Source: Marsupella aquatica (lineage: Eukaryota > Plantae > Marchantiophyta). From it: a stretch of 64,000 bases of DNA. Positions 12,414 through 36,628 of this stretch are shown piece by piece. The stretch is taken from assembly GCA_973895155.1 (NCBI GenBank), contig OZ316898.1, positions 9,561,761 through 9,625,760 of the forward strand, in the 5' to 3' direction. Both the position numbers and the translations under genes were made by a program. The notes beneath the pieces were generated by a model. That model was not told the origin of the DNA. It was given only the letters and a program-made list of their open reading frames with translations, and did no database searches. Each line of letters begins with the position of its first letter. Position 1 is the stretch's first letter.

Positions 12414-13544
12414 GGAGATATATGCTTGATGGGCCCCCTGTGAACCTTTCTTACTTGATGGGCCCCTAGGTAACTTTTTTAACCAAATAGGACCCTTCTT
12501 AATGACCAGTACACCTGTTCTTGTGTGGTGCCTACACCTGTCCTTGTGTGGTGCTTACTATGTACAGTGACTCCAGGCAAACTGCATGGCTGAACCGTGC
12601 GACCGACCCTGCATGGTCGACTGAGAAACCACGGAGTTTATTCAGGAGAAACCGCGAAAAGTGACTGCCGCTGTCGAAACTCTGATTTGAAGACAATATG
12701 CATTGTCTTCAGATTCAATGGGTTAATGCCTGAAGACACAATGGATTATGTCTTCCCGTGTTTCAAGGTTTAGGGTGTACCCCGACACCTTTGGGTTTGT
12801 CTTCTTTTGAAATTGTTTGTATGCATTGCACAAGGGAGTATCACCATTTTTTGAGCACATTTGTCAATCATTTACGATTTTTGTTGTGGCGGTAGTGGGC
12901 AAATTTTGAACATTGAATTTGAATATTCTTTGTGGACATTTGGAGGTACCCTACACTGACGTTGACAGTCGCATATGAAAACATCGTGAAAAACATACCT
13001 AATGACTACCCCGCGATACGGTGAAAATTTGAACCCAAAAACATAATCCATATTGTATTCAAGTCACATTTTGGGCAGCGGCGTTAGCTTTTGGCAGTTC
13101 TCCCACATCATCTCCGCGGTTTCACCTGTTTCTCCCACATGTTTCTTTGACCATGCAGGGGGGCCTCCCACACGGTCCAATAGTCACAAAAACCCATACA
13201 AGCAAACCTAATGACTACCCCGTGATCGGTCAAATTTTGAATCCGAAGACATAATGCATATTGTCTTCAAATCACAATTTTGACAACGACAATCACTTTT
13301 TGCGGTTTCTCCTGAATACTCTCCGTGGTTTCTTGGTCGACCATGCAAGGTCAACCGCACAGTTCAACTGTGCAGTTTGCCTGGAGTCACTGTACATAGT
13401 AGGCACCACACAAGGACAGGTGCAGGCACCACACAAGAACAGGTGTACTGGTCATTAAGAGAGGTCCTACTTGGTAAAAAACGTTACCTAGGGGCCCATC
13501 AGGTAAGAAAGGTTCACCAGGGGGCTCATCAAGCATATATCTCC
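12414..13544. mobile_element. Non-autonomous long-TIR (foldback/MULE-like) element
   Basis: 12414-12717 is the imperfect reverse complement of 13237-13544 (GGAGATATATGCTTGATG...CATCAAGCATATATCTCC). An internal direct subrepeat of ~210 bp starts at ~12995 and ~13205. No clean TSD. Confidence 0.7.
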
Positions 13545-15569
13545 CCATTCAACTTTCCAAACCTCCTTCCACTTGCATTGCCCAAACCTCAAACCGAATC
13601 TCTGCCAAATGTCAACTTTTCGAACCTCCTTCCACTTGCATTGCCCAAACCTAGTTCCCTCCAAATGCCACCAAGTACTTAGAACTATTGGTGGAGCATT
13701 CTTCACTGCCTTTGTAGACTATTGTTAACTTACCAAGATTTATCTGCAAATGATGCATGTATCATTCCTGCCTCTATTGAAGATTGCAGGTTCACAGTAG
13801 TTACCTAGTCACAGCCTGCACGGATAGGAGGATAAATGAAGTGGTGCGGGCTGTGAACAAAGCTGGTTCATAGTAGTTACCAAGTCACTATACGGATAGC
13901 GGGATGAATGAAGTAGGTGTAGGCTGTGAAGCTTGATTTGCCATATGCTAGACCTTTGAGTGCTGGAGGAGACTAGAAAATGCAGTGACCGACCTCATTG
14001 CACTGGTAATCCTAGAGTAAAATTTTCAAAGTTGCGAAAAAATACAGCACGGTCCATTCAAATTTGTGCTGCCGCATTGCAAATTACCCACACGTAGAAG
14101 CAGCATTGCTTGTGAATGACAGTATACGTGGAGGATCAATGTAAACAAGTATATAACATGCAATCCACATTTGCAAAACTCGACAGGCTTGGGCACACGT
14201 GACCACAATTGGAAAGAGTCCAAGTCCACTTGACATTATTTTACTGTCTTTGCGGCTGCGTGTCTTTCGGGCGTCATGTTCAGACTCAGCTGGATTGCCT
14301 GAACCTTTGCTACATTCAGGTACAACATTTTGATATTGCCCCGGGCTTCTCGACTGCTCTCTATATTGAACCCCCACCTTTGCTTTTCGTGGAGTAAACC
14401 TGGTGGGAGGCGCTGGTTCTCCACCGTTGGATTTTCTTTTTGTGCCACATGAAGCAAGGACCATAGGAACGGAGGGACCCGACACTACTTTCGTGAGGAC
14501 CACATCATCAACTTCAGTGGGCTGGGTCACCCCACTTGGCGAATGCGGCTTGGGCACATACGATCGTGGAGAGGGCAGAGCCAATACGGGAGTGAGTAGA
14601 CAGGGTGCGTTGGGAAGAGGGGGCGGATGACTTGGCCGGGGACTTGGCACATCCTTACGGGCTGGTGGTGGTGGCAGAGCAAGAACCGAAGGGTTGGGTT
14701 CAGGCATGGGGCTGACATGTAAGACAGGACTCTGCATGTCAGTTGGGTGGGGGGACGGAGTGGAAGACCTCCACATAGCCAATCTTTTGTTGGCAACCTG
14801 ACAATAATTGACGATGACAAAGTGAGTTACAAAGCGAGTGACAGAGTGAGTTACAGTAACAGAAAATGATTAACATTGTAAACTCATAGAAGTTATTTAC
14901 TTAATACGAGAAATCCCTAATCTGGATGAACACCGTAATTCCTGCCATAATCATGCACATTGTAATAAAACACTACTTTAAGACATGTAAACTGTGGCAA
15001 GGGAAGTACCTGATTCTTTGTTCGCGCCATAAACCCTGACACCTGCAAGTGATTTCGTGCAATCATAGTACGTGCTTAGTAAAATTTCAGGAAATGAATA
15101 ACAATGTACGTTCCAGTTATTCAATTTTGCATGGAGTCGAACAATGATGGTATACAGTTCCAGGCAAATACATATGTGCCAGACAATTGATTCATGGCAA
15201 AACCGAGTGAGTTCTAGGCATACAATAAAATGTAAGGAATGCAGCAAAAGCGGATGAAAGGAACGGTGAACAGTATGCAGGACACCGTGTTTGAGATAAA
15301 TATTTGTATGCTGCAAATTTAGGTATACAATAGTCCTGCCACTCGAACAATGAGTGTTCATTCAGGAGCTTGCCAGAGACAAAGTTCCTTCGAAAAGGAA
15401 GTTCCTTCCAAAACGACTAAGTTAATCAAACGCTAAACTCATTCTAGAACTACCAGTTGCACCCAGAGTGCACATCCAATGATGAACTGAAAACTTCTGC
15501 TAGGCATCGGACAATGGATGACATTGTGCCTTGGGTTTCTGAAAAGTCATCATCGTCACCGCCTTCCTC

Positions 15570-16345
15570 CTATACCGCCTGTGAGGAGTCTCCTGTGGTC
15601 GAAGTCGGTGTGGTGTGCGATGCTGCCTGGGTTTCGCTTATAGGTGATTGTGCGGTCACCATGGATGGGGTACTGTTGTTTTTTGTTGCAGGGGAGGAAT
15701 CTACAACTCCCGAAGCAAGTGGAACAAACCTGGGGCCATTGGAACATGGTAAACGTGGAGGGTGTGCCCTGCGTGGAGCTCTGGAGCTGAGCCGTGTCAC
15801 AGGCGCTGTAGGGGTTCGAGTTTGAGTCCAAAGATGGGATTGTGGCAGGGTACTAGTTGATGCTACAAGGTCCAACTCATTGATGGACAGTATACCACGA
15901 TTCATCCGAAAAACAACATTGCAAAGGGGCGCACCCTTCACCGCATCATGGATTAACTGGAACTGATCCAGTGGATCCATACAGGCTAATGCAGCTGCGG
16001 ACAGGCCCAACAAATTTTGTGCTGCATCCCAAATAGCGGCCCGCAAAGCTGGCTTCCCTAGTTAGGTTCTAGTGAACCATCGGTTAACAACAACTCGAAC
16101 CGGAAGAACTTGCTATATGTCCCATTCTGCAACGCATCATGCTTGCAATGCTTCTGCCTTGGACCTTCTATTAAAATTTTGCACAACCCTCTTGGAATGA
16201 CCTCTATACAACCTCGATATAGGAACTTTTTTGGAAAAGGATTTGGGGCAATGAAATTGAAAACAACAACACTACATGGACCTATGTACCCTGTCTCCTC
16301 CCTCATCACAGCTGCTTGCACATCAAACAGAGTTGGCATCGACAT
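15570..16345 (-). pseudogene. RPA1 C-terminal OB-fold/Zn-ribbon-like ssDNA-binding protein, frameshifted (Helitron-type RPA)
   Basis: FLYRGC...CK...HCKH...FFRFELLLTDGS then, after a 1-nt frameshift at ~16058, LRAAIWDAAQNLLGLSAAAL. This matches the Rep_fac-A_C pattern (YxxC..C..l.l.D.tg...a.llG.sA). A Pro/Ser-rich tail follows and may continue in 14084-14782. Confidence 0.6.
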
Positions 16346-17106
16346 TGAATTTCTCTTACCGGTTCGCGCTATGAACCCTTCAGATGAGACTTGAAAATGC
16401 CTAGTTCTCTGCGCAATTCAAACAGCGTTTAAGTGAATACTAACTCACCCTGCAAAAATACCTGAACATTGGAAGCGCATCGTGAGGGAATGGTTTGTAA
16501 TGCAAACACTAACCAGATGCGCATGGACCTCGAATGTCGGCTGCCAAAACGTTGATTTGCAGAGTATGCAATAGGGCTTGCACTATCCTCAAAAAGGGTC
16601 GCGCGGGAAGGAATGTTCTGGACTCCAATTGCCTTCTTAGGTATTGCATCCCTTCAACTCGTACCCCTGGAATACAGTCCCTTTTGCATACATCGCGATG
16701 GAGTGTAAATCCAGGCGACCCAAGAGGGGGATTTTAGCACCGGTGCAATCGGGGGTGCGGGCCCGGGACGGGTTTTCATTTCAATAGGGACAGTTTGGGG
16801 CATGCTTTGGGGACAGGTGCGGGAGTGCCATGGCCGATAAGGGACATGCTGCCCGAATAGTGTACGGACTGCCCAAAACCGTGAAGTGATGTAACCGCGA
16901 CATTCAACACTATAATACCCTGTAAACCCTCCCTCTCGCCTCATTAATGTGCATCGATATTTGGAATTGCGCTGAATATCACTAATGAGGAGGATCAAGA
17001 ATGATGCGTCTCCCTCCATTTTTTGAAGTGGCTTGATTATTTCCCTTGTCACAGAAAATGGTATATTTCGGAAGACTATCCCCATAAAAGTGACCTGAAC
17101 TTGTAT

Positions 17107-17360
17107 TAGGGATGGGAAGACTATCCCATCCCTATAAAAAGTGACCTAAACCCCGACCTAGCCTTATGCTACATTTTTTAATAGGTAGATTTTAAATCTA
17201 ATCTGGCCGGGCCTTGTATTATAGTTTTTAATAGGTAGATTTTAAATCTAAAGTGGTCTGCCCTGGTATTTATAGTTTTTAATAGGTAGATTTTAAATCT
17301 AAAGTGGCCTGACCTTGTATTATAGTTTTTAATAGGTAGACTTAAAATCCAACCCACTAG
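17107..17360. repeat. Hairpin plus 50/51-bp tandem repeat (3.5 copies) with internal palindromes
   Basis: Perfect 11-bp stem tagggatggga/tcccatcccta (17107-17134). Unit ...tttttaataggtagattttaaatcta... with period 50-51 from 17175 to 17350; each complete unit contains the palindrome TAGATTTTAAATCTA. Confidence 0.85.
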
Positions 17361-17789
17361 TGTGACTCTGGTGAGTGAATAGGAGGTTCCGGGTTATGAG
17401 CCAACAACGGTGACAGCAGGAGTGACATGGGCAAATAATATATTTAAGGACAGTCACAGAATTGTCCAAAATTCATAAGTGCAGCGCGCGCATGTGGAAT
17501 TTCCTTTTATTTATTCAGCTATCTCAAATAGGAAGTAAACGGCAGGCCCCAGCAAGATCTTGTCAAATCATTGGGTCCCAGGCAGGTATCCATTTGTTGT
17601 GCCTAGTAAGGGAGAACAAATTAAATCTGCCACAAAAGAATAATAATTTAGAAAATATTACACGTACTAGCTAGGTATCATAGAGCACAGATCCTTTTCA
17701 AAGACAGTTCTTTTGTTTGTACCTCTTCATAGGAAATGATGAAGAACACTTAGTAGACTCTCCCCACCCCAATCGTGACAGGGACCCAC

Positions 17790-17945
17790 ACCAGGAGGGA
17801 GAGAAGGTAAAACAGGGCCACAAAATAGAAAATGGCTATCCACAAAATACATTCCACCCACACACATATACCTGTGTGAAGAGAGGATCAAACCTGTGAC
17901 CTTTCAGATTGAGGTTCATCCCCTAGCCAAGTGACCTAAGCCACT
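17790..17945 (-). mobile_element. Putative degenerate tRNA-derived SINE
   Basis: The minus strand has A-box-like AGGTCACTTGG and B-box-like GGTTTGATCC, followed by cacacaggtat...gggtgg, which resembles 48725-48860. Confidence 0.3.
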
Positions 17946-19093
17946 TGGTTCCTTTTCAAAGGTCTTATGGAGGTCATTGTTTGGGTGTGAGTTCCTAGAG
18001 CCTTGCTAACATGAAAATGGATCTATTAAAAGTGTAAACGATGCTGGTTAGATTTTGGTGTATGGAGTTAATTCCAATCCAAAGCCTCTCATGGTGCCGC
18101 CATAGAATTTTGGATTTGCTTAGATGGGACCGATGCCTCATCTAATGGCTATAGACAGGTACTCTTCACAGCCTGCGGTGCAAAGTGAAGCCTATGTAAG
18201 CTGGGATGTAATTCTTGTCAGACAGGAAGAAACACTATGGGTGTGTGTTATCTTTTGTACTAGGTGGTTATCATTTCCATAACCTGGAAAATTTATGGAG
18301 TAATTTTTTTAACCCGGTAATTTTTTTTCATGACAATATTACTTATGATAATGATGGAGGCCACGGTTAGTAATCCCAAACCAAAAAGTCATTACCCTAT
18401 ACATAATTGAAATGGGGTGTGCTGATGGAGGGTTGAGGATGGGTGGAGGGTTGAGGATGAGTCTCAGAATATACTGACCCTCTATTTATGTTCAAAGATC
18501 AAACGGGCCCTTCCCGGGACACTTAGTCTAGCTGGCGTTTTGGAGCACTCTCTGATTAATATCATGTTCTCACTGAGCTCACCATACGAATCACAAGATT
18601 TATTCAGGCACAGGGAGCTAAGAACTCGGACATTAGCGAAGAAGATGGAGAAGAAAATGAATACGATCATTAGTACCAAAGTCCAATATTGGGCCACCTT
18701 AATGTCTGAGCGATGCATAAGCTCAAATGGGAGCTCACTCGGAACCTGATCGACTATTTAACTCACTTGAGGAGCGAGAATAGCACTCAGCCGAGTGACA
18801 AATCCTGCAGGCTTTATATCAGACATTAGAATTTGTCCTTCGGACTGTGCCTTCCAAATGACAAACAGCCTCCTAGACAGGATGTATGAAATGCTTCCTA
18901 TCTACGCATTCATTCAAATTTGCTCGACAGACAAGATCAAGTTCTAGCACGGAGAATACTCCAGAATTTCTCGTTCCGGCAAAATCTCTTCGTGCATAAA
19001 ACATGAAACTAAACTATATATAAACGATATAAAATTAACACTAGGGACTCCATAACTGCACCCGAGATTGGACTCAAAAGTGTGGTTGCTTTA

Positions 19094-20416
19094 TCAAGTC
19101 GTGTATCCAGCAGGTGACAGAAGCGCAACCTCATCGATCATAGGCCCGCAAGAGTCATTGAAGTTAAGGCTGCTAAATGAAATTGATGTAACGTTTGTCA
19201 AAGCCCAGAAGGTAACAGTGTGAAACTGCCATAGACTTCCTATGTTGATGCTGTTTGAGCTTGACACATTCATGGTGAAGGTCTGTTGTAACTCAGGTCC
19301 GGCATTCGGTACTCCTGCTGTGACGTTGACAACTGTAGAACTCGCGTTAGTTACCCGCACCATCAACCGAGCTTCGTCGTACGTTGGGCTGCATTGCCAT
19401 GTTGGCCGGGATTCTATGTACAACTGTGGGGGAAACCCATTGAAGTAGAAGGAGAGAAGGTATTGACTTCCCACCTCCGTTGCAATCGTTTGACTGACCT
19501 GACCCCAGTGATCAGCGTCTGAGTGAGTATTCAAATGAACGCTGTATGATCCTTCAGCAGGTGCAAGCAACCCAGATTTCACATAATCAATGGGGCCATA
19601 GTCAATGACCCACCCACAGAGGGAGAAGTAGCTGGGTGTCGCTTGGGTCCAGTCGTTCCAAGCAATATTAGATCCGGCTTGAATTGTGCTTCTTTCGAAA
19701 CCTCCGTTGACAATTTTACCAAGAGACGAATTGGCGACCTTGAGCAACCCCTCGACCGTGAACCTGTTAGTAAATCTGTCAATCAAGTTCCTCCCGGACA
19801 GAAATGTGAACTCAGAAGTATACGAATAGCCTGGAACTGGGACGCCCGAGAGGGATGAGTTGAGAGTGATATCGAATTCATAAACTTGACTTGTAGGATT
19901 CGTCTCCTTGTTTGGCAGTTCTCCCACCATAAACAACTGCTCCCCTTGTGGCCTTGGCAATGCGCTGATCACACGGCTGCCACTCCTTCTCCACTGTTGA
20001 CTAAGTGCAGAAGAATCGCAAGGGCGCAATTTCAGTACACCCAGAGAATCCCAAGTGACAGCATCGATGCAAAGAACCTGAGTCAGATTTCCGAAAACGA
20101 TGGTTTGTGAAGGTTCGTGGTAAGCCCACATCTCGTTATGTTGAACTCCATCGCACCTGTAGGTGCCAATTGTGAGGTTCCAGAAAGGGCCGTTTGCTAG
20201 ATCTGCAGCAGTTCGAGTATAGCGAGTGTCATATGTCAACCCGTTAATGCAGTACGTGCAGTAAGGTTCAGAACCAGGACTGTAGGTGCCACTGGCAAGC
20301 CACCCGAAGTCGTAGTCTTCGGGGTTGGAGCTGTAGTTCCAGACCGCTTGGACGCGCGAAGGCAGCAAGGAATTGCATGTCCACGTGAGCACCAGCACCA
20401 TCCAAAACATCGTCAT
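19094..20416 (-). CDS. Secreted ricin-B-lectin-like + DUF642-like protein (ectodomain-only paralogue of the kinase at 29426)
   Basis: Intronless 440-aa frame from the first ATG (20416). Signal peptide MTMFWMVLVLTW...VQA. Ricin-like YRCDG..NEMW / LCID...LKLRPCDSS..SQQW. DUF642-like IVNGGFE...GW...IDY...EGSYSVHLN...QVSQTI.T..G..Y.LSF...CGPMIDEV. Ends TGA TAA with no transmembrane or kinase domain. Confidence 0.85.
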   Translation of the reverse strand: MTMFWMVLVLTWTCNSLLPSRVQAVWNYSSNPEDYDFGWLASGTYSPGSEPYCTYCINGLTYDTRYTRTAADLANGPFWNLTIGTYRCDGVQHNEMWAYHEPSQTIVFGNLTQVLCIDAVTWDSLGVLKLRPCDSSALSQQWRRSGSRVISALPRPQGEQLFMVGELPNKETNPTSQVYEFDITLNSSLSGVPVPGYSYTSEFTFLSGRNLIDRFTNRFTVEGLLKVANSSLGKIVNGGFERSTIQAGSNIAWNDWTQATPSYFSLCGWVIDYGPIDYVKSGLLAPAEGSYSVHLNTHSDADHWGQVSQTIATEVGSQYLLSFYFNGFPPQLYIESRPTWQCSPTYDEARLMVRVTNASSTVVNVTAGVPNAGPELQQTFTMNVSSSNSINIGSLWQFHTVTFWALTNVTSISFSSLNFNDSCGPMIDEVALLSPAGYTT

Positions 20417-20887
20417 GACATCTACAATCGGACCTTTCGTATGATTGGGGTTGGCCAGTGTGCAATCGGCAAACGAACTCCAAGCTACAGAGTTGCTATT
20501 TCTATCTAAGTGTCGATCAGTGTCCCACCCCACAGTCCACTCTGTCTGATTTGAGAGGCCGGGGCACTATTTGCCCATTCACGTATGGTAAGCCCTTGAC
20601 GAAGCATAGCATTGACGAGTAAGACGATCCAAATGTGGAGTAAGTTGGTCTCAAGTCGAGATGTGCAAGATCACAACGACCAAAACTGCGTGGGCCATCG
20701 GAAACTACTCGGCAGTTAGTGGCTGCAATGTGGCAAGGAAAGTCGTGAGAATTTTTCCTGTTCATCTTGTTATCTATGCTGACTAGGTATGTAGCCTGAC
20801 AATTCGCATTTCGTTTAGGGAAAATGGTCTCTCGGGATGGCCACTGTCTGAAGCGGACCAGTCACTCGGCGCTCAGCATAATTTGTC

Positions 20888-21299
20888 AGAACTTAAAGCC
20901 GGGATAGACACAAACCTTTGAGAAAAAGCCAACTTAAAGCCGGGATAGACACAAATGTTTGAAAAAAAGCCCCTATGGACAAACACAACCTGAATGGACA
21001 CAGAACAAACCTAAGATTGTGCTTGTATAATACACTTTTCACTTGTGCTCCAATGGTGACCTGTAAGGAGCTGTTTGACTGGGAGTAGGAGATTTTTGGT
21101 TGTTTTTTCCCGTAGTCTGTCCAGCAGGAGCAATGGAGGAGGTTAAACGTACTTAACATAATGTCTTGGCTAGCTTCCTTTCATAAGACACCTGTAATCC
21201 ATTTTGGGTGTCATTAGGGATTGGTGTTACACTGTCAACAGGCTATGTCCATCGGGGTTGTCCCTGCAAACATTTGTGTTTATCCCGGCTTTAAGTTCT
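20888..21299. mobile_element. MITE, 412 bp, with 8-bp target-site duplication
   Basis: TIRs AGAACTTAAAGCCGGGATA...TATCCCGGCTTTAAGTTCT, flanked by AATTTGTC at 20880-20887 and 21300-21307. The left TIR is internally duplicated. Confidence 0.85.
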
Positions 21300-22177
21300 A
21301 ATTTGTCTTGATGTTAATATCTTTTACTATTCTGAATGGCTTACGTAGCAAAGAGTATTAATTATGTGGGGATTAAATATGCCAATCATTCCGTCAGATA
21401 GGAAAATGAAGGGTCACGATGAAGGGAAAATATGGGGTGCCTGGTGAAATCAAAGAGTTGGTTCCATTGAGTGATAGTTACTCATCTAGAAATGAAAGCT
21501 TCGAAATTGGGGGAAATAGGGGGTGGCCTGACCAACTGTGACTAAGAACAACTTGTACAAGTGACTTCACATTGACACTAAGTCATTTCTATATCACTCC
21601 TTGTGCTTCGTGTCAATGTTAGTAAGTTTAAATTGGTTGAAGAGGTTTTTTGACAAGGGAATAACAGTTATTGTGTATCTTTGGTAACCACGAATTATGG
21701 TAATTGTGGTTTAAACCAAGGCTATTTATCTACACACAGCATAGCATTTGGCAGCAATGCTAGGGAAGATCCTAGATTCTCTCAAATCTTCCAAGTCATT
21801 GGACATAGACTTGTGATTGGAAAGCCTTTTCCTGCCATGTGCCCAGAGAATGGTGTTCTAGATATTAACCGGGCTCATGACTTGGCCTGAAATTGTCTTG
21901 TTGTCTGATATTGATTTTTAATATTAAACATTTCTGTCCATTTTGCAAGGCTCACAAATCACGTTTTTCAACAACTTTACATTTCAATTACTATCACGGA
22001 TAATGCCACATCTTATTCAATGAGCACACAAATAATGCCACCCAAAAATTAACATGGGTAAGCCTATATCATGGGAGGCGTTCGAGTGGTGATGCAAATA
22101 AGATTCATGTAGTAAGCCTCACAAGACCTGAACGACCCTAGACTCGTTCACGTAGTAGTGGGCAACCAAAGAGAGAA

Positions 22178-22800
22178 GCTCAGTAGCAGCTCCAAAGCTT
22201 GAGATTTAATGCAAAGACAGCGGAAAGGCATCAATAGTCACTGTGCTTCTGTTGAAAACTTCCTTGCTTCAATACTGTAGGTGAAAGACTTCGAAGACTC
22301 ACGTTGATCGTCCAAAGTCTCATAGCGGCAATGAGTCACGTGTACTACAGTAGCCTCCCAAGACCTTAAAGACCGTGCTAGACTCCTTCGTGTAAAACCC
22401 TAAATGCTAAACCAAAGATAGGCTCAGAATTTGTCGTTTTTAGCTAGTTTGGCTAATGTCAGCTTCTCCAAGGAGGAGATATTGTTTATCAGTTTTACTG
22501 AGTTACTTCATATATCCCTAGATTTCTGGACAATGGCGAATGGGGTCCATGATTTGGTGTAAAGTGGCTAACATATATAACAAAGAATCTAAGTGACTAT
22601 TGGTGTACAGTTAGCAAAGTGGGGAACACTTTTTGAGGATGTGTAATTTGGCGAGTTTGGTGAAAATACGCTTACTCAGAAGCAGCTCCAAAGCTCAAGA
22701 ATTCGTGCAAAGACAGCTGACAGGCACCAATTTTCCCCTTCTGCTGACAAATTCCTGGTTCCCGACTATAGGTGAAAGACTTCGAAGACTCATGTTGATC
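22178..22800. repeat. Diverged ~130-bp direct repeat (two copies)
   Basis: agcagctccaaagct...taggtgaaagacttcgaagactca.gttgatc at ~22178-22309 and ~22674-22800. Confidence 0.7.
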
Positions 22801-23104
22801 TTTTCAAGAGTACCATCGAGGAGGGCACCGTGGATGCCATCCTCAAGATCCGGGTCAAGTAGAGTAGCTTTTGCTCCAGAATGATTGTTCCTGCCAATAA
22901 ACAGTGTGTTCTGTGTGCTGCCTGGCTCCACCACAAGTCCAACAAGTCGACAAGTCTTTGGGAAGTGAGTTGTTCCTGCTCATGGTGCAGACACGTAGTG
23001 CTCGTTGATTGGGATTTTGAAAGAATTTTTTAATGGAGACTTGGACGGTGATTTTGTTTCATGAATGGGTGGGGTCAACCAAGGCTTGCAAGTGGCCAAA
23101 TTAC

Positions 23105-23410
23105 TCGAGGGGGGGGGAGTGCGCCACCTTCGGTTTCGTAAGGGTGGCTTTACAAGAACTTGGGAGCAACAATTTATTTTTTTCTTTCTAAAGTGTGAAA
23201 TGCAATCTAACCTTTCATATGTGGGAACCGGTCACATTTCACTCTACATGATCTTGGTATCACAATCAAGCATAAATATTACCCAACCTAGTCACCTGTC
23301 AGTGGGCGGCCCCTGGTGGATCCCATTTTTTGCTGTGATGTGTGCAAGATTTGTTGTTAAAAACTTAGACCTCCTTGTGAGGTGGTCTAAAAACGTGGAG
23401 AAAATGGCTG
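23105..23410. repeat. Dispersed repeat family A, copy 1
   Basis: Shares ggtggctttacaaga and agacctcc...gaggtggtctaaaa blocks, in the same order and spacing, with 40610-41230. Confidence 0.55.
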
Positions 23411-24239
23411 CTTCTTTTTAGGGAATTGCATTGATTACTTCCTAACCTGACCCATTTTGGCTCAGGGTTTTCAATTTTGTGTAAGATGGTCATCAGCTCT
23501 GCTTTGGATGGAGAGACACTGAATTGCCCCACCCTCTTGTAAAGCCCCCTTAATGGCAAAAATTGGTCAAATTCCAACTCACTTAAACCACACTTGTCTT
23601 ACAAAAGCTCCCTATTGCTCATTCCTGAATAGTGTACTTGCCATAAATGAAGGTGTCCACTTTATATTGTGAGCTACAGGTAATTGCGGTTTAACATCCA
23701 CTTAGCTTTTATAAGAGCATCTCGAACCCAAGGGGGTTTTGCTTATTTGGTACATTATATATTCAGTCTGACAATTATATATTTAGTTCACTTACTTTAC
23801 GTGTCATTAGGAGTCAACTGAAAGGCAGCCCCAACCTTGATGGGGTAATTTCCCTACACAGCAGGTATCAACATTTGACAGCCATAGATTGAGATCTTGA
23901 AAACCTAGCAACGAGCCCACTAAGGAGTCAAGTAATGTATAATCTCCCATATACAGATCCAATAACCCCATTACTAAATTTATCCTTTTCCCACCTACAC
24001 ACACACTAGACAGAATCCCTCCCTCCTCCTACTCTCCCTCCTTCCTGGCCATTCCCTCTGTCCTTTCAAGTTTGTAAAACCACAGTGTGAGGGATGTTGG
24101 CAAAGTCTTTATTTGGATGGTTGATGTTTTACCACTTTAGTGAGAATCATTCACCCATGTAAGACATTTTTTCTGTTTTAAAAAGAGAAGGCTTTCAAAG
24201 TGAGATTTGAACCCAAGACCACCAGGCTACTTGAAGTCC

Positions 24240-25075
24240 AAACCTCTCTTGTACTTAATTTGTGACCTCGCCCTGAAAGATCACTTTAGGGGGGCTTCTT
24301 GCCCTAGCCACTAGGGAATTTCTTCAAACACTTGGGATCTTCTTAGGAAGCTCACCTTAAGAGGAACAATGAAGGTCACTTTTTATCTACCTGGAAGCTC
24401 CCTTCTTGGACTATCTTGTCTACTTCTCCAGTTTACTAAAGGGATTTTTCTAGTGGTTTTCTGCTGTAAGAACGGCAGGGAACCAAGGCCAGAATGAATA
24501 CCTTTAATATTGAAATCAATAGTCCTTGTTTGCAAAGAGATAAAAGTCTTCACGTGGACTTTCTTGCTAGTAAAGTTCCCGAGTGTGATCTTCGTGGAAG
24601 GTCTGATGCTGGACTTTCATGCCATAGCCAATGTTGCAAAAAAAAACGAGGAGAACCACTGCCTGGGGGCTGGGGTGACCTAAGTCCCGGATACCTCACT
24701 TATTTTTGCCCAACCCATCATCCGACAATCATGTACGAATAAATAAGGTTTTCATTGGACTTTGTAAGTGGAAGACTTATGATCAGAGATCATTAAGGTT
24801 GTTTTAATCTGATTTTGAGGATTTTCAAAACAAAATTAGGGAATGTTCCTACAATCTAGCCTAGAATATTCAAATTTTGGGGGGATTTTAATTTTTTTTG
24901 GACCCCCTTGGAGTGAGGTCTTGACACCTAGGTATCAAGTTCAATCCTCAACCAACCAATTTGCTCCACACTTCTGATGTACATGGGACTTATAGGTTAA
25001 TGCACTCTGACTTGCATGCAACAGCTCAAACATTCTTAAGAGGGTTTGATTTACTCGGGCCTCTTGTCAATTTCC
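24240..25075. repeat. Dispersed repeat family B (degenerate TE), copy 1
   Basis: Collinear blocks shared with 38520-39112, e.g. tctacctggaagctccc..cttggactatcttgt, tggactttcttgc and aaccaaccaa.tttgctccaca. Confidence 0.65.
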
Positions 25076-27200
25076 TATTATTTAGTGATATATCCTCCTA
25101 CACCCCTCCTTTGCTTTACCACACTTTTTAGTTTGATCTGACTAGCTTTGTGTCCAGTCGATCTTGGAGTTGACTTGGGGGTTTCATTTCCACAAAAATG
25201 ACACATCATGTGCGACGAAGGAGAGGGTCGTTTCATTGGTTCAAAGGAAAGACTTAAGAATTTTCTCAAAAGAATAGACATGGTTGACAAAATTAGGGTT
25301 TAGGGTCTAATTACTCTTGTGACAGGCTGGAGCAAGTTTGGTTCTAAATATATATAATTTTTCATAGCTTTCAAGCTTTTTTGGCAACAAAATATGGTTT
25401 TTGGCTAGAGGTTTTTGTAGCCAGGTCAAAGCTTGCACAAAAATAAATATTATCCCCCATTTTCCCTTCTTCTCTTTCCCCACCTCAGTGTTACTTTTTT
25501 CATGTACTCCACTTTTTCCCATTTGTCTTGCTTTTCGATCTCTTTTATCTGTCCAACTCTTTTTTCCTCCGGGCCAGGTTCTCTCTATCTATTCCCTCTT
25601 TATTATGAGCTTGCGCCTCCATCCCATGCGTAGTTTCTTATTCTCTTGGGAGGATAATAATGCTTAATATGTATTCCCCATGAAAAGGTCACATATACAC
25701 TTCGATATAACCCCCAAATATGGTACTTTTATGTGTGATTGTGAGTCCCTCACTTGCAAGCAGACAGTATCTGCATAAAGACGTACTACATGTACCGTTC
25801 TGTCATTTGATTACTTGCACCTCAAGTGAACAAAGTGTCAATTTGATTTGTGTTGGCTCAAAGAGCATCCTGGTTTTTATGTTTCCCAATTTTCACTCAT
25901 AAATTTATTTTTCCGGTCATTGTATGCAATTTTGTTTTTTCAGCGAAACCTTGAAATACTTCATTGATAGTCCAATACTCATTAATTCACGATACCACCA
26001 TTGTGGCTTTCTTACGTAGAACAAAATGCAAGGGAAATGTTTTTTAAATCGTTGAAGGTTGTTGACTTCGTGTTCACGAGAGGATAATATTTGGAAATTG
26101 TTAAAGTGTGCTGTCAAGTTGTGTTATGCATGCAACCAAAAAAATCTTGGATTGGTACTCTAAAGTTTTAGGTGGCTGACTGTTTCTAATAAAGTGACCC
26201 TATCAATACCTTGTCAATGCAAGAAAGCTTGTATCCTTTAAGATTCCTCTGCGCTCGCTTCCCTAGTTCCCTGTCACTTGTTTCACTATTCACCTTTACT
26301 GATATTATATTATTATATTTTTCAACTAAAAGGTTGATACTTGCAAGGCTTCCCTCTTTGTTTACTCTTTGGCTCACTCCAAGAATATTTGAAATATGAT
26401 TTGTTTTTTAATTTTTTTTCTAAACTTGCGCAAAGTCAGGTGGCAGTACAGTACTTTGGTGGACATAGATGTACGGCATGTACTTTGGTGTACATTGACG
26501 TACTGAATGTATTCTGGTGCAAGTGTACAGTGGCCATAAAGTGGGGTAGGTACCATCATACAAGAGGGAGGGTGAGGGGAAGCCTTGAGATGGTTGCGGT
26601 TCAGCTCATGTGTTTTCATGGTGCTCTTCTTAACAAAAATTATTACAGGTCATGCTTAACCATAACTTGCTCTATAAGGGAAGTGTCCAAAACTTCCCTC
26701 TTTTTTCACAATTCAATCAATGTTTTACTCTAGCATGTCAGTTTGCTCTACAATTTCAGAAAATTAATTCCATTTAATGGTAACTACTGGTAAATTGTAC
26801 CTTTTGAAGGGCAGTTGTGATTTACAGTCTAGCCTTCATGATGTAGGTAAACTGGAACCACAACTGAAGCTTATTTGTTTAGTAACAATATATCATGATA
26901 TTTAAACTATACTTGCGATGCAAGTAAGGATCAAAGGATGGGAGATTCCGAACTGTAAACAGAGACGGGATTCATGAGTCAAGAAATGACTGAGGCCCTT
27001 CCAATAGATTCATGCACACATATGTACAGCCTCAAGGAGCACTCACTTGGCTCCTGAGCTGCTGGGTCATGCAAAGCTTGCACGAAGGAAATGTCTTATT
27101 GGAGAGGGAGAAACAGTTGTAATAAAATATTAGCGACATATTTTTCTCACCTCAGCAACTTCTGTGCAAAGCAGGCAACAATTAAGGTAGTTACCTAGTA

Positions 27201-27413
27201 CTAGCCCAATTACCCGTTCCTTGAACGTAAACAGATAAGAAGAAAAAAAATTTTGCACAATAATATTTCTATGCTATTTTGTTAATCCTCATTTTAAGTG
27301 TTTTTTAATTGAGATTCATAATCACTTTTTCTGTACTGGGGTAACGGTCTAGATGCTTCACTCTAGACCCTAGGCCCTTAAGAGTAGACTTCATTCGCAC
27401 TTTTATAGTAAGA
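27201..27413 (-). mobile_element. Non-autonomous mini-Helitron (213 bp)
   Basis: Minus strand A|TCTTACTATAAAAGTGCG...cgttc-aag-gaacg hairpin...GGTAATTGGG CTAG|T, inserted in an AT site with no TSD. The 5' ~70 bp are homologous to 12180-12251. Confidence 0.85.
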
Positions 27414-27780
27414 TTAGTATGCATTTGATGGCTGGTTGTTGGTCCCTCCTTTCAAGTTTGGGAGGAAGAGCTTAAGTTTGGCATTAGATATTAGAGTATA
27501 TGATAAATAGCCACATTTACATCATTGGGTAGCACGCTAGTGGAGGTCTTGCATTGGATTGGGATCCGGAGGTCTAGGGCTTCAGCCTTGCACTCAGCAT
27601 GTGCCTTTTCATAACGATGCAAGCGAGTTAAAAGAGGCTCAGGGAAGGGCCTGTAGCTCAGGTTTGAGTGTTTGCTATTATTGCAACTATCCCCAATACC
27701 CTCTAGCTTGGGTTTCAGTGTTTGCTATTATTGCACCTAACCTGATCGACTACCAGTGTCTATACATAGGAACGGCTCTC

Positions 27781-28655
27781 TGTACCTACTGTAGACTCCC
27801 ATGCACACCCCTCCCCACAAGCATATTTGGTCTGAATGTCAATTTTCAAGAGGAATTTCACCCTATGCTTCACTTTAAGGAGTAACTCATGAATTTCATG
27901 GTATACGCTGATGTCCCTGTACTTAGACTCCCATGACCACCCCTCACAAGCATACTTGGTCTGAATGTGAAATTGCAAGAGAAATATCACCCTCTGTTTC
28001 ACTTTGAGGAGTCACTCATGAATTTCATGGTATTTGATGGCAAAGACTTTGGTGTCACAGCCGTACCTAGACTCCCATGTCCACCCCTCATCACACGCAT
28101 AGTTGGTCTGAATGCATGTGAAATTGCAAGAGAAATATCACCCTATGCTTCACTTTAAGGAGTAACTCATGAATTTCATGGTAGGCTTTGGTGGCAAAGA
28201 CTTTGATGTCACAGCCGTACCTAGACTCCCAGGTCCACCCTCATCACAAGCATACTTGGTCTGAATGTGAAATTGCAAGAGAAATATCACCCTATGCTTC
28301 ACTTTAAGGAGTAACTCATGAATTTCATGGTAGGCTTTTGATGGCAAAGACTTTGATGTCACAGCCGTACCTAGCTAGACTCCCATGTCCACCCCTCATC
28401 ACAAGCATACTTGGTCTGAATGTCAAAATTGCAAGAGGAATTTCACCCAGGCCTATGGTCCACTTTAAGGAAGTGTCCCCTGAATTTCTTGGTAGACTTT
28501 GATGGCGAAGACTTTGATGTCCCTGTACCTAGACTCCCATGTCCACCCCTCATCACAAGCAAACTTAGTCTGAATGTCAAATTTCCAGAGAAAGTTCACC
28601 CTATGGTTCACTTTCAAGAGTATCTCATGAATTTCATGGTAGACTTTGATGGCAA
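27781..28655. repeat. Satellite-like tandem array, ~150-bp unit, ~6 copies
   Basis: ctgaatg anchors at 27832, 27961, 28108, 28261, 28416 and 28570 (periods 129-155). Most units contain the palindrome CATGAATTTCATG. Confidence 0.92.
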
Positions 28656-29425
28656 ATTACAATTACAGTCGAGAAGAGCCAAATGCCTATGCGCTGCATG
28701 ATTATAATGAGGGGGCCCGATGTGAGAACAGAGCTAGAAATCGATGGCGAGGCACTGACTGCGAGGTGGAGTATAGTATAGATTTGATTTGTCTCTATCA
28801 CCAAGCCACTTGATAGCGAGCTAATTGGCTGATATGTGATGATTGTCATGTGAGTCTCGTAAAGTTGAAATCCCAATTATTCGGAAGCACGCTTTCCACA
28901 GAATGGTACAGTGACCAACCTGACCTTGCGAAAGAGCTAGTCTACACTAGCTGATCCGTCGATTTAAGCCAAGTTTGTCAATTCATTAGATCTCACTTGC
29001 TCCCACGCAGGAATATCGGGAGGAATATGATACCTGGCACTCGGAGACCCGTTCAGCGATGGCTTGCACTTGGAGACCCGTTCAGCGATGGCTTCAGCAG
29101 TCTGGCAATAGTTAAACCTTCTTGTTTTGTATGTCAGATTCGACGACGTGGTTATCAGAAGCAGCTGTCGAAACCGGGCCTTGTTCGATGCATGCAACTG
29201 AATTCTCAAGCTCAGAGAGTCAGAATTCAATTCGTGTCATTCCCATCTGAAACCAAATGCCTGATCAAATGAATTGTATCGGTTGGCTGAGTTCAATTTC
29301 CGACCATAGCTAGCAGTCTTAGGTGCGACGGCCCGTAGATCTTCCGCAGGTTGCCGCTTGGTTGAGCAGCTGGAGCGAGCAGCAGCTGCGTGAACTGGCG
29401 GACAAGTGCAGCCTCCGTGTGTCCG

Positions 29426-32211
29426 ATGGCCACCTCGAATCAACACGCTGGCGACATGGCACATCAAATGCTCTACTTGTTGTGGCTTTTGCTGGCGTTC
29501 AGCTTGATGTGCACTCCCTTCTTGCTCTGGCCCGTTCAGGCGAATTGGAACTATAGCTCCAACCCGGCTGATTACGACTTCGGCTGGTTAGCCAATGGCA
29601 CAGATCATAGCGGTCCGGAGCCGTACTGTACGTTTTGCATTAACGCATTGACATATGACACCTCCTATAATCGAACAGTTGCAGATGAAGCAAGAGGCCA
29701 TTACTGGAATCGCACAATTGGCACTTATAGGTGTGATGGCGTTGAAGATAATGAGCACTGGGCTTACCACCAACCCACACGAACCATCGTCTTCGGAAAT
29801 CTTACTCAAGTTCTCTGCATCGAGGCTAGCACTTGGACTACTCTGGGTCTACTGAAGTTGCGGCCCTGCAATTCTTCTGCGATCAGTCAACAGTGGAGGA
29901 GGAACGGCAGTCGCGTGATCAGTGCATTGCCAGGGCCAAATGGGGAGGAGCTATTCATAGTGGGAAAATTCCCTGACAAGAACACGAATCCTACTACCCA
30001 AGTTAACATAATACAAGTGACGTTGCAGTCATCCCTCGCCAGTACCTCAGGTCAAGGGTTTTTCTTTTCCTCTAATTTCATATTTCTCTCCGCAAAGGGC
30101 TTGATCGATAGGGCTACCAACAGATTCACAACCCAAGGGTTGCTTGAAATCACAAATTCCTCTCTGGATAATATTGTGAATGGAGGTTTCGAAAAGAGCA
30201 CTATTATAGCTGGATCTGACATTACTTTTAACGACTGGACCCAACCGGTGCCCAGCTATTTCTCCCTTTGCGGATGGGTCATCGACTATGGTCCGATAGA
30301 TTATGTCAAATCTGGATTGCTTGCACCTTTTGAAGGCTCATACAGTATACATTTGAATACTCACTCAGATACTGATCACTTTGGTCAGGTCAGTCAAACA
30401 ATTAGAACGGAGGCGGGGAGTGAGTACCTTCTATCGTTCTATTTCAACGGCTTTCCGCCACAGTTGTACATAGGGTTGTCTCGGCCAACATGGCAGTGCA
30501 GTCCAACGTACAACGAAGCTCGGTTGATGGTGCGGGTAACTAACGCGAGTTTTACAGACAAGATCTCAGCAGGAGTTTCAAATGACCGGACTGAATTACA
30601 GCAGAACTTTAGCATTAATGTAGCCAGGTCAAACAGCCTCAACATAGGAAATTTATGGCAGCTCCATTCGGTAAAGTTCAGGGCCTCGACTAATGTCACC
30701 ACGATTTCCTTCAGTAGCCTGAATTTTAATAACTCGTGCGGGCCAATGATAGATAACGTCATCCTGAGACGTCTTAAGCCACGATCTTTCTGGGAAAGCA
30801 AGACATTTCAGGCAGTTGTTGGATCCGTTGCTGGACTTGTTTTTCTCATGGCATTTCTTCTTGGTATTGTCGTAGCGAGGAGGAGGTTCTGCTTGTCTGA
30901 GGAAGACTACTCTGACTTGTACAAGACTGAGAATGCAAGAATATTTTCTGTCAAAGAGCTGAGCGCCTCCACGAAGAAATTCAGTGCTGTTCTGGGAGAG
31001 GGGGCATTCGGTACTGTATACAAAGCTGATTTTCCAGATGGCACAATAGGTGCAGTCAAAGTGGAGAAGCTGAAGCAGTTTCATCTTTCGACCAAAGTTC
31101 TCGCCTCGGACGAAATTGCTGTTTTACTCAGAGTTCATCACCGCAATTTGGTGAACTTGACGGGCTTCTGCATTCACAAAGGTTTGTAGCTTACTCCCAA
31201 TCGATCTCTCGGGGAGTCCCTCTCCAAACTACACCAACAAGAATGCTAGAGGTCTAAGTTTGGTTGCATCGGGGCTCAGGGAGTGATATAGTTTCTCGAG
31301 CTCTTTCAAAGCTTTTAAGAATTGAGGAATGGTGACTGTATGACCCGTTAAAATATTGCATTGTACGAATTTGTGCAGGGAGACATATGTTGGTATTTGA
31401 GTATCTTCCAAATGGAAGCCTCTACGATCGACTCCATCAGTCTGTCATACCGGTGTCTGCCGCAGATATAATGAATTCCGTCGAACTCCGTGACCTATAC
31501 GCGAACGTACTCCCGTGGCACACGCGGGTCAAAATTGCCTCCAACGTGGCCTATGGCCTTGAATACCTCCACCACGATGCAGATCCTCCGATTGTGCATA
31601 GGGATGTGAAGTCGCGGAACATCCTACTCACAGCCACGGATTCAGCTAAGCTTGCTGACTTCGGGCTTTCCAGATCTGCTCCTTTAGATGCCACAAAGTT
31701 CGAGTCCATCGAGACCATGGTGAGAGGCTCAATTGGGTATTTGGATCCACAGTACTTCCAGACTGGAGTCTTCTCTTCCAAGAGCGATGTGTACAGCTAC
31801 GGAGTTGTATTACTGGAGCTCATCTCTGGCCATCAAGCCATCCACAATGCCGCTGCACTCACCTACTGGGCAGCTCCCTTCATGACGAGCCCATCCCTGT
31901 ATCACGAGCTGGTGGACAAGAAGCTTAGAGGAAAATACGAACCGGATGAGATGGCCTCTCTAGTTGAACTGTCGATTATGTGCACGCAAGAAGACAGTAG
32001 AATGAGGCCCACCATGCGGCAGGTCGTTGCGTTTCTCAATGCCCGGGGCCTTGAAGTAGCTGGAGGTGAATCTCACGAGCAAATAGAGGCCCCGTCCATA
32101 TCAAGGGAGGATTACCATAAGATGAAGCCAATGTTCACAGATTTGGAGGCGTTGCCGAACTTCTCTGGTAGTAATGAGAACATTTTCTTCAGCCCACAGC
32201 CTAGAGACTAA
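29426..32211 (+). CDS. Receptor-like Ser/Thr kinase (RD type, RLK/Pelle) with ricin-B-lectin-like + DUF642-like ectodomain; 2 exons
   Basis: Exons 29426-31181 and 31379-32211 (GT..AG intron 31182-31378; joins as GFCIHKG-RHMLVFEY). Signal peptide ending VQA and TM AVVGSVAGLVFLMAFLLGIVVA-RRR. Kinase motifs GEGAFG, AVK, HRDVKSRN, DFG, GSIGYLDPQY, KSDVYSYGVVLLEL and RPTM. Confidence 0.93.
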
Positions 32212-34461: not shown

Positions 34462-34745
34462 CAAAGGGAACCAGCACATTTAGTTTCCCGAAGGGGAAGC
34501 GGTGAAGCACACAACCACTTGACACAACCTGTTGCCCACGGAACAAACAGCAGAAAAGTTTGTCTCCTAATAAAGAGTCCATCCCTCGTATCTAAAACTG
34601 ACGAGGGCTACAACTAATCGAGTCCCTATCTAGTCCCCAACCGAGAGGCACTTGAGAGAAAGAACAGGATCAATTGAGTCCCCACACAACGTTTTAGTGA
34701 ACAACGAGGGCAAGTAACCCTTTCACCAACTAAGCCAATCTTGAA

Positions 34746-36311
34746 TCATCCAGCGTCAAGACTGTCAAGATTTATAGGATCTTTGCTCATTACTCTAGTC
34801 AGGCGATGGACAACAATGTCTATACTAGTGAAAAACGAAACGAATCCTAGCCCGAAACCTGTAATAAAAGGATTCTTGCCTAAGTATCCAAGGGCTTCGA
34901 GAATATCCACGATGACGGCAAAATTTGTATCTACCTTTTCATCATTGAGACCCCGGTCTCTCTCGTTCAAGATGGACGTCCTCGACTTTTCCCCGAAATC
35001 ACAAGGCAAGTCGAATCGCCCCAATTTAGCAAGCTCTTCCTCCAGGTCTCGAAGGGAATCTGCTCTCACCTTTTCATACTCTGTCTCAGTCTCCTCATCA
35101 TCGTCATCACTCGAAGGAAATTCTGCGGTCAGAAAGCTGCTACAGCCTTCGAAACTTTTCCGTAAATGAGAAATGTTCTGTTGTAGCCAGGTCTGGTCCG
35201 CGTTGGAAATTACAATGCTCAAATGGTGGCTGATTTTATTTCCGAACACGGCGAAAAGCAGCTTAAAGAATTTCCATAGGCGCACCTCTAACCTGTCTAT
35301 TCGGTCCTTCTTCAGGACAAAAAGATACTGGGAGAATGTCCCTTCCTTCAACTCCACAAAGTTCTTGACCTTCTGTTGCGCGAATGGTGTTGGGACGGTG
35401 CTTGCTTCCGATTCGGGTTCTCCGAAGCCTGGAGTGTCGATAACATACCATCCTCGGCCTTCACCACTTGCGACTCCATCTGTTCCTCCTCTGATGCCTG
35501 AACTTGCCTTGAAGTTAGTGGAATTTCGGTCAAGCTTTCCCAAGGTAAGCATTTGTGCAAGAGTCGACTTTCCACTCCCGGTCCTTCCAAACAAGATGAC
35601 TCTTTCGGGACTCCAGGGCCCAAAGCGGTTTCTTCCTAAAACTCTTTCGGAACGACAGCCCATTCCTGACCGTCTGAGTATGCCGCACCAACTTGCGTTG
35701 CTTGAATCTCCTCTGTCGAAGGTAGTCTGTTCGTTCCTCAGAAAGAAAGCGGGACACATCTTCCAAATGCTTTCAACGAGCGTCCCCACCAACGCTTCTG
35801 TCCTAAAGTTTGAGCTTAGGACGCTTTTCGACTTTATCTCGTGTCTGCGCAAACATTTTTCAAGTTGCTGTTGCGACTCGAGACTCAAGCCATTGCTAGA
35901 CTCCGTGATCACAACTGTCATTATGTCCTCGTGATTTCCCCAAATCAGTCCCAAGACATCCAGCCAACAATTGTCACTGAAAACATTCGCATTACAGGGC
36001 TCCTTTACGATGGCATTTGTGGTCACACATATCACAATTACCATCTTCCCGAGAATAACTCTTCTTAAGGAATTTTGGGAGATCCATCGTCTCGCAATTA
36101 GAGTCGGGCTCCTACCCTGAACGTTTCGCAGAGCTAACGTATCAACGACTTGGACTCCAGATGTGTGGGTCAGGATTCGGACCCCAGCCAACGTCTTGTA
36201 TCTCTCCCAACTTCCACCTTTTGTGAGACAGTCGGCCACGAACGTTTTCTCTTCTTCCAAATTCCCCACGACTAAAATGACGGTATTTCCCGAATCATCA
36301 GTATCCTCCAT
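34746..36311 (-). CDS. Intronless P-loop GTPase (AIG1/GIMAP- or MMR_HSR1-like) with a degenerate N-terminal G-domain
   Basis: 521-aa ORF. The C-terminal domain has G1 GRTGSGKS, G2-like T, G3 VIDTPGF and G4-like ISNAD. The N-terminal domain has degenerate VILVVGNLEEEKT and VQVVDTLAL. Hydrophobic C-terminal stretch. Confidence 0.8.
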   Translation of the reverse strand: MEDTDDSGNTVILVVGNLEEEKTFVADCLTKGGSWERYKTLAGVRILTHTSGVQVVDTLALRNVQGRSPTLIARRWISQNSLRRVILGKMVIVICVTTNAIVKEPCNANVFSDNCWLDVLGLIWGNHEDIMTVVITESSNGLSLESQQQLEKCLRRHEIKSKSVLSSNFRTEALVGTLVESIWKMCPAFFLRNEQTTFDRGDSSNASWCGILRRSGMGCRSERVLGRNRFGPWSPERVILFGRTGSGKSTLAQMLTLGKLDRNSTNFKASSGIRGGTDGVASGEGRGWYVIDTPGFGEPESEASTVPTPFAQQKVKNFVELKEGTFSQYLFVLKKDRIDRLEVRLWKFFKLLFAVFGNKISHHLSIVISNADQTWLQQNISHLRKSFEGCSSFLTAEFPSSDDDDEETETEYEKVRADSLRDLEEELAKLGRFDLPCDFGEKSRTSILNERDRGLNDEKVDTNFAVIVDILEALGYLGKNPFITGFGLGFVSFFTSIDIVVHRLTRVMSKDPINLDSLDAG

Positions 36312-36385
36312 CCCTCCTCCTGCTGCACCTTTGCTTTGCCTCTGCTAAGTCTGGCCTGAGTGGGGCTCTCGTTCTGGTGCGTTCC

Positions 36386-36628
36386 ACGTACATAGTTTGC
36401 GAAAGTGCTTCCCCCACCTCACCTCAACCTCACCACCCACGAAGTGATACCTGACTGATTAGACATGTCCGAAAAAGCTAAGGAAATCAATAGACCCGAG
36501 GTGTTCCTCGGAACGTACATAGTTTGCGAAAGTGCTTCTCTCACCCTCACCTCAACCTCACCACCCACGAAGAGATACCTGACTGATTAGACATGTCCGA
36601 AAAAACTAAGGAAATCAATAGACCCGAG
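36386..36628. repeat. ~127-bp tandem duplication upstream of the GTPase
   Basis: acgtacatagtttgcgaaagtgcttc...aaggaaatcaatagacccgag occurs twice. Confidence 0.9.

Follow-up and report, generated by a model that had tools for sequence, protein, structure and literature searches.

In a 64,000-nt stretch of the genome of the liverwort Marsupella aquatica (assembly GCA_973895155.1, contig OZ316898.1, positions 9,561,761 to 9,625,760 of the forward strand; hereafter the window, in whose own coordinates all its features are given), a gene for a receptor-like kinase (RLK) lies near a second gene that encodes an ectodomain alone. We refer to the second gene as the twin. Its product has a leader and two lectin-type folds, without a membrane anchor. 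Comparison with the leafy liverwort Calypogeia fissa establishes that the twin is an intact gene, kept as a protein by purifying selection, and not a dead duplicate. We favor, at a probability of roughly 0.6 for the reading as a whole, the view that the twin is a maintained truncated derivative of the RLK that is secreted, shares the glycan class of the receptor, and tunes the access of the receptor to its ligand.

The twin is a single-exon coding sequence (CDS) on the minus strand (19094..20416; 440 codons and a TGA, with a TAA directly after it; tga taa at 19096-19091). Its ATG at 20416 lies inside a longer open reading frame (ORF; 19094-20533, minus strand), and the 440 codons are open from there. 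A predicted signal peptide, MTMFWMVLVLTWTCNSLLPSRVQA, occupies 20345..20416 (minus strand), with cleavage likely after VQA; the peptide was judged by eye, and the cleavage site was taken from the -3/-1 rule. Aligned with exon 1 of the RLK by BLASTP, the twin is 68% identical over 458 aa, signal-peptide region included. Within the mature protein, 99/130 residues (76%) match the RLK ectodomain over the first 130 positions and 295/403 (73%) over the full length, and each of the eight mature cysteines is present in all five family members compared. The first-pass annotation of this DNA, made from the sequence alone, had described a collinear copy with its own leader, about three-quarters identity over the first ~130 residues, conserved cysteines, and a TGA TAA end, a description accurate in every checkable detail. 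DNA homology between the two genes is confined to 20409-19133 versus 29478-30754 (77% identity), with no other similarity between them; on the RLK side, this alignment (29478..30754, plus strand) comprises the ectodomain only. Homology stops at a CGPMID motif, directly before the transmembrane (TM) segment of the receptor. The twin is thus laid out like other secreted paralogs of RLK ectodomains: it is collinear with the ectodomain and ends before the TM segment.

A word-based search for close relatives returned four proteins only, all from C. fissa. One, P0002, is itself an ectodomain-only protein (428 aa, single exon), 78% identical to the window twin. The other three are RLKs: P0001 (865 aa) is 73% identical to the window RLK, and P0003 and P0004 are more distant. 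P0002 and the window twin share their end point (…CGPMVDEVALQVV vs. …CGPMIDEVALLSPAGYTT). An exhaustive HMMER search of 1.84 billion representatives gave only 105 matches at E ≤ 1e-3. Those spanning both extracellular modules were RLKs from ferns (Pteridium, Adiantum), Ginkgo, C. fissa, and two Logan contigs; the combination of Ricin_B, DUF642, and kinase was seen in P0011 (Pteridium), P0018 (Adiantum), and P0088 (Ginkgo). P0002 was the only complete ectodomain-only relative among the matches, of which P0012 and P0025 lie on contigs of 1-2.6 kb, too short for classification. No match came from Marchantia.

In a maximum-likelihood (ML) tree, the two twins are sisters (support 100/97) and together are sister to the pair formed by the window RLK and P0001 (83/86). 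These four genes are joined at 90/92 and are nested among RLKs of liverwort, ferns, and Ginkgo. Because the tree nests the twin inside the RLK clade, the twin is derived from a receptor and not ancestral to it: the RLK architecture is the older one, and the twin a truncated receptor derivative that predates the split between M. aquatica and C. fissa. The proposal that a secreted lectin was the ancestor from which the RLK was built does not survive this result, as the fern, Ginkgo, and other liverwort RLKs fall outside the clade in which the twin sits. The twin could have arisen by partial duplication, or the whole gene may have been duplicated first, with a stop codon and downstream decay coming later. 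With dS (synonymous divergence) at about 0.8-1.2, neutral sequence is past alignability.

Two further family members have unusual gene models. A relative of the RLK in a Logan assembly (SRR33208280; L006:3005-4739) is called as three consecutive ORFs of 172, 159, and 227 aa, which carry the trefoil, the DUF642 domain, and the kinase start in turn; either the gene is broken or the assembly contains errors. On another C. fissa contig, P0008 (696 aa) is a further RLK of the family whose DUF642 match starts at model position 48; a deletion or an annotation error may lie behind its shortened-looking ectodomain.

Selection on the twin was measured over about 400 ectodomain codons by pairwise tests, using both the Nei-Gojobori (NG86) and ML estimators of omega (the ratio of nonsynonymous divergence, dN, to dS). 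Between the two species, the CDS of the twin is 80.6% identical; its flanks and the spacer show no interspecies similarity. Twin orthologs had a dN of 0.10 and a dS of 0.80-0.82, giving an omega of about 0.125 (NG86) or 0.158 (ML), far below 1 (likelihood ratio test [LRT] vs. 1 = 140, p 3e-32). RLK ectodomain orthologs were less constrained (dN 0.195, dS 0.92; omega 0.21 by NG86 and 0.23 by ML; LRT 103, p 3e-24), and the codon-bootstrap confidence interval of omega was 0.086-0.172 in the twin and 0.152-0.291 in the RLK, the twin being the lower of the two (P = 0.0055). Comparison of twin and RLK within the window gave 0.21 (NG86) and 0.26 (ML; LRT 87, p 9e-21), so the ratio near 1 that the first-pass annotation would have taken as evidence against a functional copy was not obtained. 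The open frame tells the same story: a neutral simulation at d = 0.8 predicted about 15 in-frame stops, with a probability of about 2e-7 of seeing none, and the twin orthologs differ by a single indel, which keeps the frame. With an ortholog omega of 0.12-0.16 alongside the ORF-survival simulation, maintenance of the twin as a protein by selection is confirmed more strongly than had been proposed.

The difference in constraint between the two genes lies mainly in the beta-trefoil, where omega is 0.115 for the twin and 0.295 for the RLK (dN 0.090 vs. 0.252); in the DUF642 domain, the values are alike (0.121 and 0.135). A relative-rate test with P0003 as the outgroup gave 21 vs. 41 in C. fissa (p 0.011) and 22 vs. 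29 in the window (p 0.33). It is the twin that evolves more slowly, contrary to the initial picture of the soluble copy as the diverging one, and diversifying pressure on the lectin lobe of the receptor is possible.

The RLK gene (29426-32211, plus strand) has two exons. Exon 1 (29426..31181) encodes a signal peptide, the beta-trefoil, the DUF642 domain, the TM segment (VGSVAGLVFLMAFLLGIVV, about 30818-30880; hydropathy 2.6), the juxtamembrane region, and the N-lobe of the kinase. A phase 1 GT..AG intron of 197 nt follows (31182..31378, with the GT donor at 31182), and exon 2 (31379..32211) encodes the remaining RD-type kinase (HRDVKSRN, DFG; PK_Tyr_Ser-Thr, E 6e-33) and a C-terminal tail. The exons were searched one by one; the protein reads HKG before the junction and RHMLVFEY after it, as in P0001 and P0003. 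Against this layout, we considered whether the ORF of the twin is only the opening exon of a receptor gene that continues elsewhere, or whether its product is attached to the membrane in another way, for example by a glycosylphosphatidylinositol (GPI) anchor. Nothing that we found supports this view, and we think it very improbable. In the RLKs, the ectodomain, TM segment, and N-lobe share one exon, so no ancestral splice site exists there. Searches by tblastn with the TM, juxtamembrane, and kinase sequences reached a best E of 0.4 across window positions 1-19133, the 9-kb spacer, and the 10-kb flanks of P0002; the 19 kb that lie downstream of the twin and the flanks in C. fissa yielded no remnant of a kinase or TM segment, also at E 1e-3. 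Splicing onto a downstream kinase exon, which the first-pass annotation had named as an outcome that would undo its proposal, thus finds no TM or kinase sequence to splice to. Both twin orthologs stop 10-18 codons past CGPMID, and their tails are short, polar, and without a hydrophobic GPI signal. The maximum hydropathy of the twin after its leader is 1.0, against 2.6 for the RLK TM segment; it has no TM segment.

The beta-trefoil of the twin (ricin-B/CBM13-like; 19793..20326, minus strand) spans residues about 31-208, and its DUF642 domain, a galactose-binding-like jelly-roll resembling carbohydrate-binding modules (CBMs), spans residues about 231-435 (19112..19726, minus strand). DUF642 (PF04862) scored above the Pfam cut-off in both twin and RLK; in the twin, the score was 46.6 bits against a cut-off of 27, with residues 274-471 of the long ORF translation matching model positions 3-156 of 157. 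Ricin_B (PF00652) reached 25.2 bits (twin) and 25.9 bits (RLK), just under a Pfam cut-off of 29 that the relatives P0011 (32.6) and P0018 (29.3) pass. We modeled the twin with AlphaFold2 on a 14-row alignment of the family (predicted local distance difference test [pLDDT] 76, predicted template modeling score [pTM] 0.78), and the model placed both domains in known folds. Residues about 31-208 matched 4owj (Z 14.1, root-mean-square deviation 3.0, 129/131 residues) and then dozens of ricin-B/CBM13 entries; residues about 231-435 matched the CBM61 structure 2xom (Z 13.7, 141/145 residues), and also CBM4 and CBM16. The first region is a three-lobed beta-trefoil with a Q/x-x-W motif in each lobe: W39, W97, and W142 are invariant, one per lobe (FGW, EMW, QQW), and Q140 is nearly so. 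The second, by its model match, has the DUF642 fold of the galactose-binding-like or CBM type. At the N terminus, where hydropathy was also scored, the model has a hydrophobic helix at residues 3-16. The twin also carries ten N-glycosylation sequons. With a leader (recognized by eye) and no TM segment, GPI signal, or kinase, this two-lectin-module protein has the hallmarks of a secreted glycoprotein and is predicted to be exported into the cell wall or apoplast.

Twin and receptor bear a trace of DNA exchange. A tract of 79 nt in the twin (19333..19411, minus strand) is 94% identical to its partner in the RLK (30479..30557, plus strand), with flanks of 74-77%, and was found independently by a repeat finder. 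Over this tract, the window pair differs at 5/75 sites and the C. fissa pair at 20/75. Informative sites among the four ingroup genes grouped orthologs in 60 cases, same-species genes in 43, and the third possible arrangement in 11, and the excess of the same-species pattern over the third arrangement was significant (binomial p 1.4e-5). This excess is partly compositional: third-position GC content (GC3) is 0.52 in the window and 0.59 in C. fissa, and third positions account for 30 of the 43 sites. Consecutive same-species sites formed a run of 10 (permutation p 0.0025). We read the tract as one short conversion event, probably in the window lineage. Within it, the window pair matched the C. 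fissa twin at 10 sites and the C. fissa RLK at 5; the difference is not significant, and the twin rather than the RLK was, if anything, the donor.

Such exchange raises the prospect that the twin is a non-functional partial duplicate whose frame has been repaired by repeated conversion from the RLK. The tract of ~79 nt and the surplus of same-species sites (43 vs. 11) are what this scenario would draw on, but conversion of that kind would make each twin like its own RLK, whereas the tree pairs the twins with each other (100/97). Nor can conversion account for the kept frame, since each twin is more like the other twin than like the RLK of its own species. Twin orthologs are also separated by a dN of 0.10, against 0.19 for the RLK orthologs, with an omega of 0.12 at a dS of 0.8. 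Identity to the RLK outside the tract is only 74-77%, the tract sites (10 vs. 5) point if anything to the twin as donor, and part of the same-species surplus is third-position composition. A dead copy is accordingly a most unlikely explanation.

The gene arrangement was compared with that on C. fissa contig CBCUJL010000007.1. There, P0003 (8348999-8352461, with Kelch genes next to it), P0002 (8382226-8383512; the ortholog of the twin), and P0001 (8405226-8408182; the ortholog of the window RLK) all lie on the plus strand, and an AIG1 GTPase gene (8409847-8411397, minus strand) adjoins P0001. In the window, an intronless AIG1/IAN-type GTPase gene (34707..36390, minus strand) is syntenic with this 516-aa C. 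fissa gene and anchors the neighborhood downstream of the RLK in both species. The RLK-AIG1 neighborhood is the same in the two species; the twin is inverted in the window relative to the RLK. In C. fissa, P0002 and P0001 stand in tandem on the same strand, 21.7 kb apart, whereas in the window the two genes are transcribed divergently, as the first-pass annotation had stated, with 9.0 kb between their start codons (spacer 20417..29425). When the surroundings of the twin were compared between the species with blastn and tblastx, neither conserved non-coding DNA nor shared flanking genes emerged, leaving the AIG1 gene beside the RLK as the sole syntenic gene, and the Kelch genes between P0003 and P0002 are absent from the window. 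The linkage of the pair is therefore conserved and its orientation is not; the head-to-head layout, to which significance had been attached, is a tandem one in C. fissa, and the idea of a head-to-head module is rejected. A shared regulatory unit is unlikely because the two species do not agree in how the pair is oriented and spaced, and a shared promoter is not plausible at a spacing of 9-22 kb.

A receptor kinase gene of the beta-trefoil and DUF642 family duplicated before the split of the window species and C. fissa, and the duplicate shed the TM segment and all that follows it. The twin has stayed linked, at 9-22 kb, to its closest kinase gene in both species, with conversion in the window species. 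Under the reading we favor, its product would go to the cell wall or apoplast and there bind a glycan ligand of the same class as the neighboring receptor, a sharing favored because constraint on the DUF642 module is equal in the twin and the receptor. The twin would then modulate the access of the receptor to this ligand by buffering it, by competing for it, or by presenting it, as SLG does for SRK. The first-pass annotation had put the pair forward as a candidate receptor/decoy or co-receptor module, and the twin may act in either way.

Several observations weigh against this reading. The pair is not oriented or spaced alike in the two species, and a linkage of 9-22 kb may simply be left over from local duplication. 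Between species, the receptor beta-trefoil (29500-30030) has a dN 2.8 times that of the twin (19793-20326); because the receptor trefoil evolves this much faster, the trefoil ligands may differ, and binding by the twin and the RLK through this module may no longer be the same. The signal peptide of the twin rests on judgment by eye. Exact-sequence and 90%-cluster look-ups returned neither the twin nor P0002 outside the C. fissa genome assembly, and both were absent from the transcript-derived assemblies in the collections searched.

Since the receptor trefoil is the faster one and the gene arrangement is unstable, there is room for the twin to have an independent function in the wall. It could be a secreted cell-wall lectin with a structural or enzyme-regulating role, with proximity to the receptor gene only a trace of tandem duplication. 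Purifying selection that is stronger on the twin than on the RLK ectodomain, the different rates at which the two beta-trefoils diverge, and the unconserved orientation and spacing of the pair all fit this account, as does the fact that the DUF642 proteins of seed plants are wall proteins that interact with pectin methylesterases (PMEs) (PMC13516882). It is harder to square with the equal constraint on DUF642 in twin and RLK, with the conversion tract, which shows continued interaction of the genes at the DNA level, and with an architecture (one DUF642 domain and a trefoil) unlike the two DUF642 domains of canonical members. Taken as a complete account, we consider it possible but on the unlikely side; on the question whether the twin shares the ligand of the receptor or is an independent lectin, the two readings have roughly the same odds.

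A bolder form of the favored reading, which we put forward as a doubtful conjecture, would have leafy liverworts sense a cell-wall or microbial glycan through an old and conserved sensor of two parts, the twin and the kinase. In such a sensor, the slow soluble lectin would capture or present the ligand, and the faster-evolving receptor, built of the same modules, would read it out. If true, this would amount to SLG/SRK-like or soluble-receptor logic of independent bryophyte origin, in a receptor family lost from flowering plants.

The analogy that had been drawn to SLG/SRK and to secreted DUF26 proteins and their cysteine-rich RLKs (CRKs), with different domains, is apt as a kind. SLG is a secreted protein collinear with the ectodomain of the tightly linked SRK; it derives from duplication, has undergone gene conversion, and is kept by selection. 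The likeness to our pair extends to each of these points: a linked secreted glycoprotein collinear with a receptor ectodomain, duplication, conversion, and selection on the soluble form. SLG and SRK are, however, built of G-type lectin, S-domain, and PAN modules where the liverwort pair has a beta-trefoil and DUF642, and here nothing points to a polymorphic recognition locus, the pair is oriented differently in the two species, and the host is a liverwort. XA21D of rice, a receptor kinase paralog without TM segment and kinase that is predicted to be secreted and is still active (partial resistance), has been likened to SLG (PMC8872720). Like the twin, it is an RLK paralog predicted to be secreted for want of a TM segment and kinase, but its ectodomain consists of leucine-rich repeats and its truncation is recent, within a rice cluster, whereas the twin is old (dS about 0.8). 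Cysteine-rich receptor-like secreted proteins (CRRSPs) of the beta group were "born from partial duplications of vCRKs," and their tandem copies have undergone gene conversion (PMC6368629); they too consist of a lectin-like ectodomain only. Overall, the secreted form is ancestral among DUF26 proteins, while here the RLK architecture is older, and the beta-trefoil and DUF642 family is tiny (105 matches in 1.84 billion proteins).

Canonical DUF642 proteins are secreted proteins of the cell wall, described as spermatophyte-specific and associated with the binding of polysaccharides and the regulation of PMEs (PMC13516882). BIIDXI, TEEBE, and OsDFOT1 resemble the twin as secreted wall proteins with the DUF642 fold, but they differ in having a tandem of two DUF642 domains and in lacking a beta-trefoil and kinase relatives. 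The twin departs from the canonical plant wall type in having a single DUF642 domain after a beta-trefoil and in belonging to a liverwort lineage, and its sequence relation to that type is distant, with a Pfam E of only 4e-12. A "DUF642-kinase" of ferns and Taxus is covered in one sentence of a published paper (PMC12512272); these RLKs belong to the same parent family but are full receptors. In the literature searched, ricin-B, DUF642, and kinase were not combined in any paper, and RLKs with a beta-trefoil and DUF642 ectodomain are essentially undescribed. No ectodomain-only member of the DUF642-kinase family has been reported, and our searches gave P0002 alone besides the twin.

Secreted twins of receptor kinases were already known, and the twin, which comes from a little-known receptor family and an under-studied plant lineage, reveals no new principle. 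The pair is a natural experiment in which the same two lectin modules occur both in a membrane receptor and in a soluble protein, each kept across a dS of about 0.8. The soluble twin also provides a handle on the ligand, being easy to express for glycan arrays, and lets one ask whether soluble twins recur as a selectively favored outcome of RLK duplication outside seed plants.

Elsewhere in the window, a degraded Helitron (2288-7582, minus strand) is spread over several ORFs that include a Helitron_like_N domain (5846-6814, E 2e-54), a PIF1 helicase (3361-3867, E 4e-35), and a Pif1 2B domain (2288-2977), all on the minus strand. As the maker of the twin copy, this element (2.3-7.6 kb) was rejected, the twin being older than the species split. 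The ORFs of the spacer have no Pfam match, the spacer has no similarity to its C. fissa counterpart, and an Rfam scan of the window from 12 to 36 kb gave no match. At 27788-28668, which is 0.8-1.6 kb upstream of the RLK start, the spacer contains a tandem array of about five units of ~150 nt (66-92% identical) with neither a Pfam nor an Rfam match. A 41-nt duplication (93% identical) lies at 20890-20971, about 470 nt upstream of the ATG of the twin, and a short tandem repeat of three 50-nt units lies downstream of the twin at 17170-17352. Finally, a 75-nt sequence occurs on both sides of the twin, at 12179-12252 and 27341-27414 (81% identity, same orientation), and may be a small dispersed repeat.

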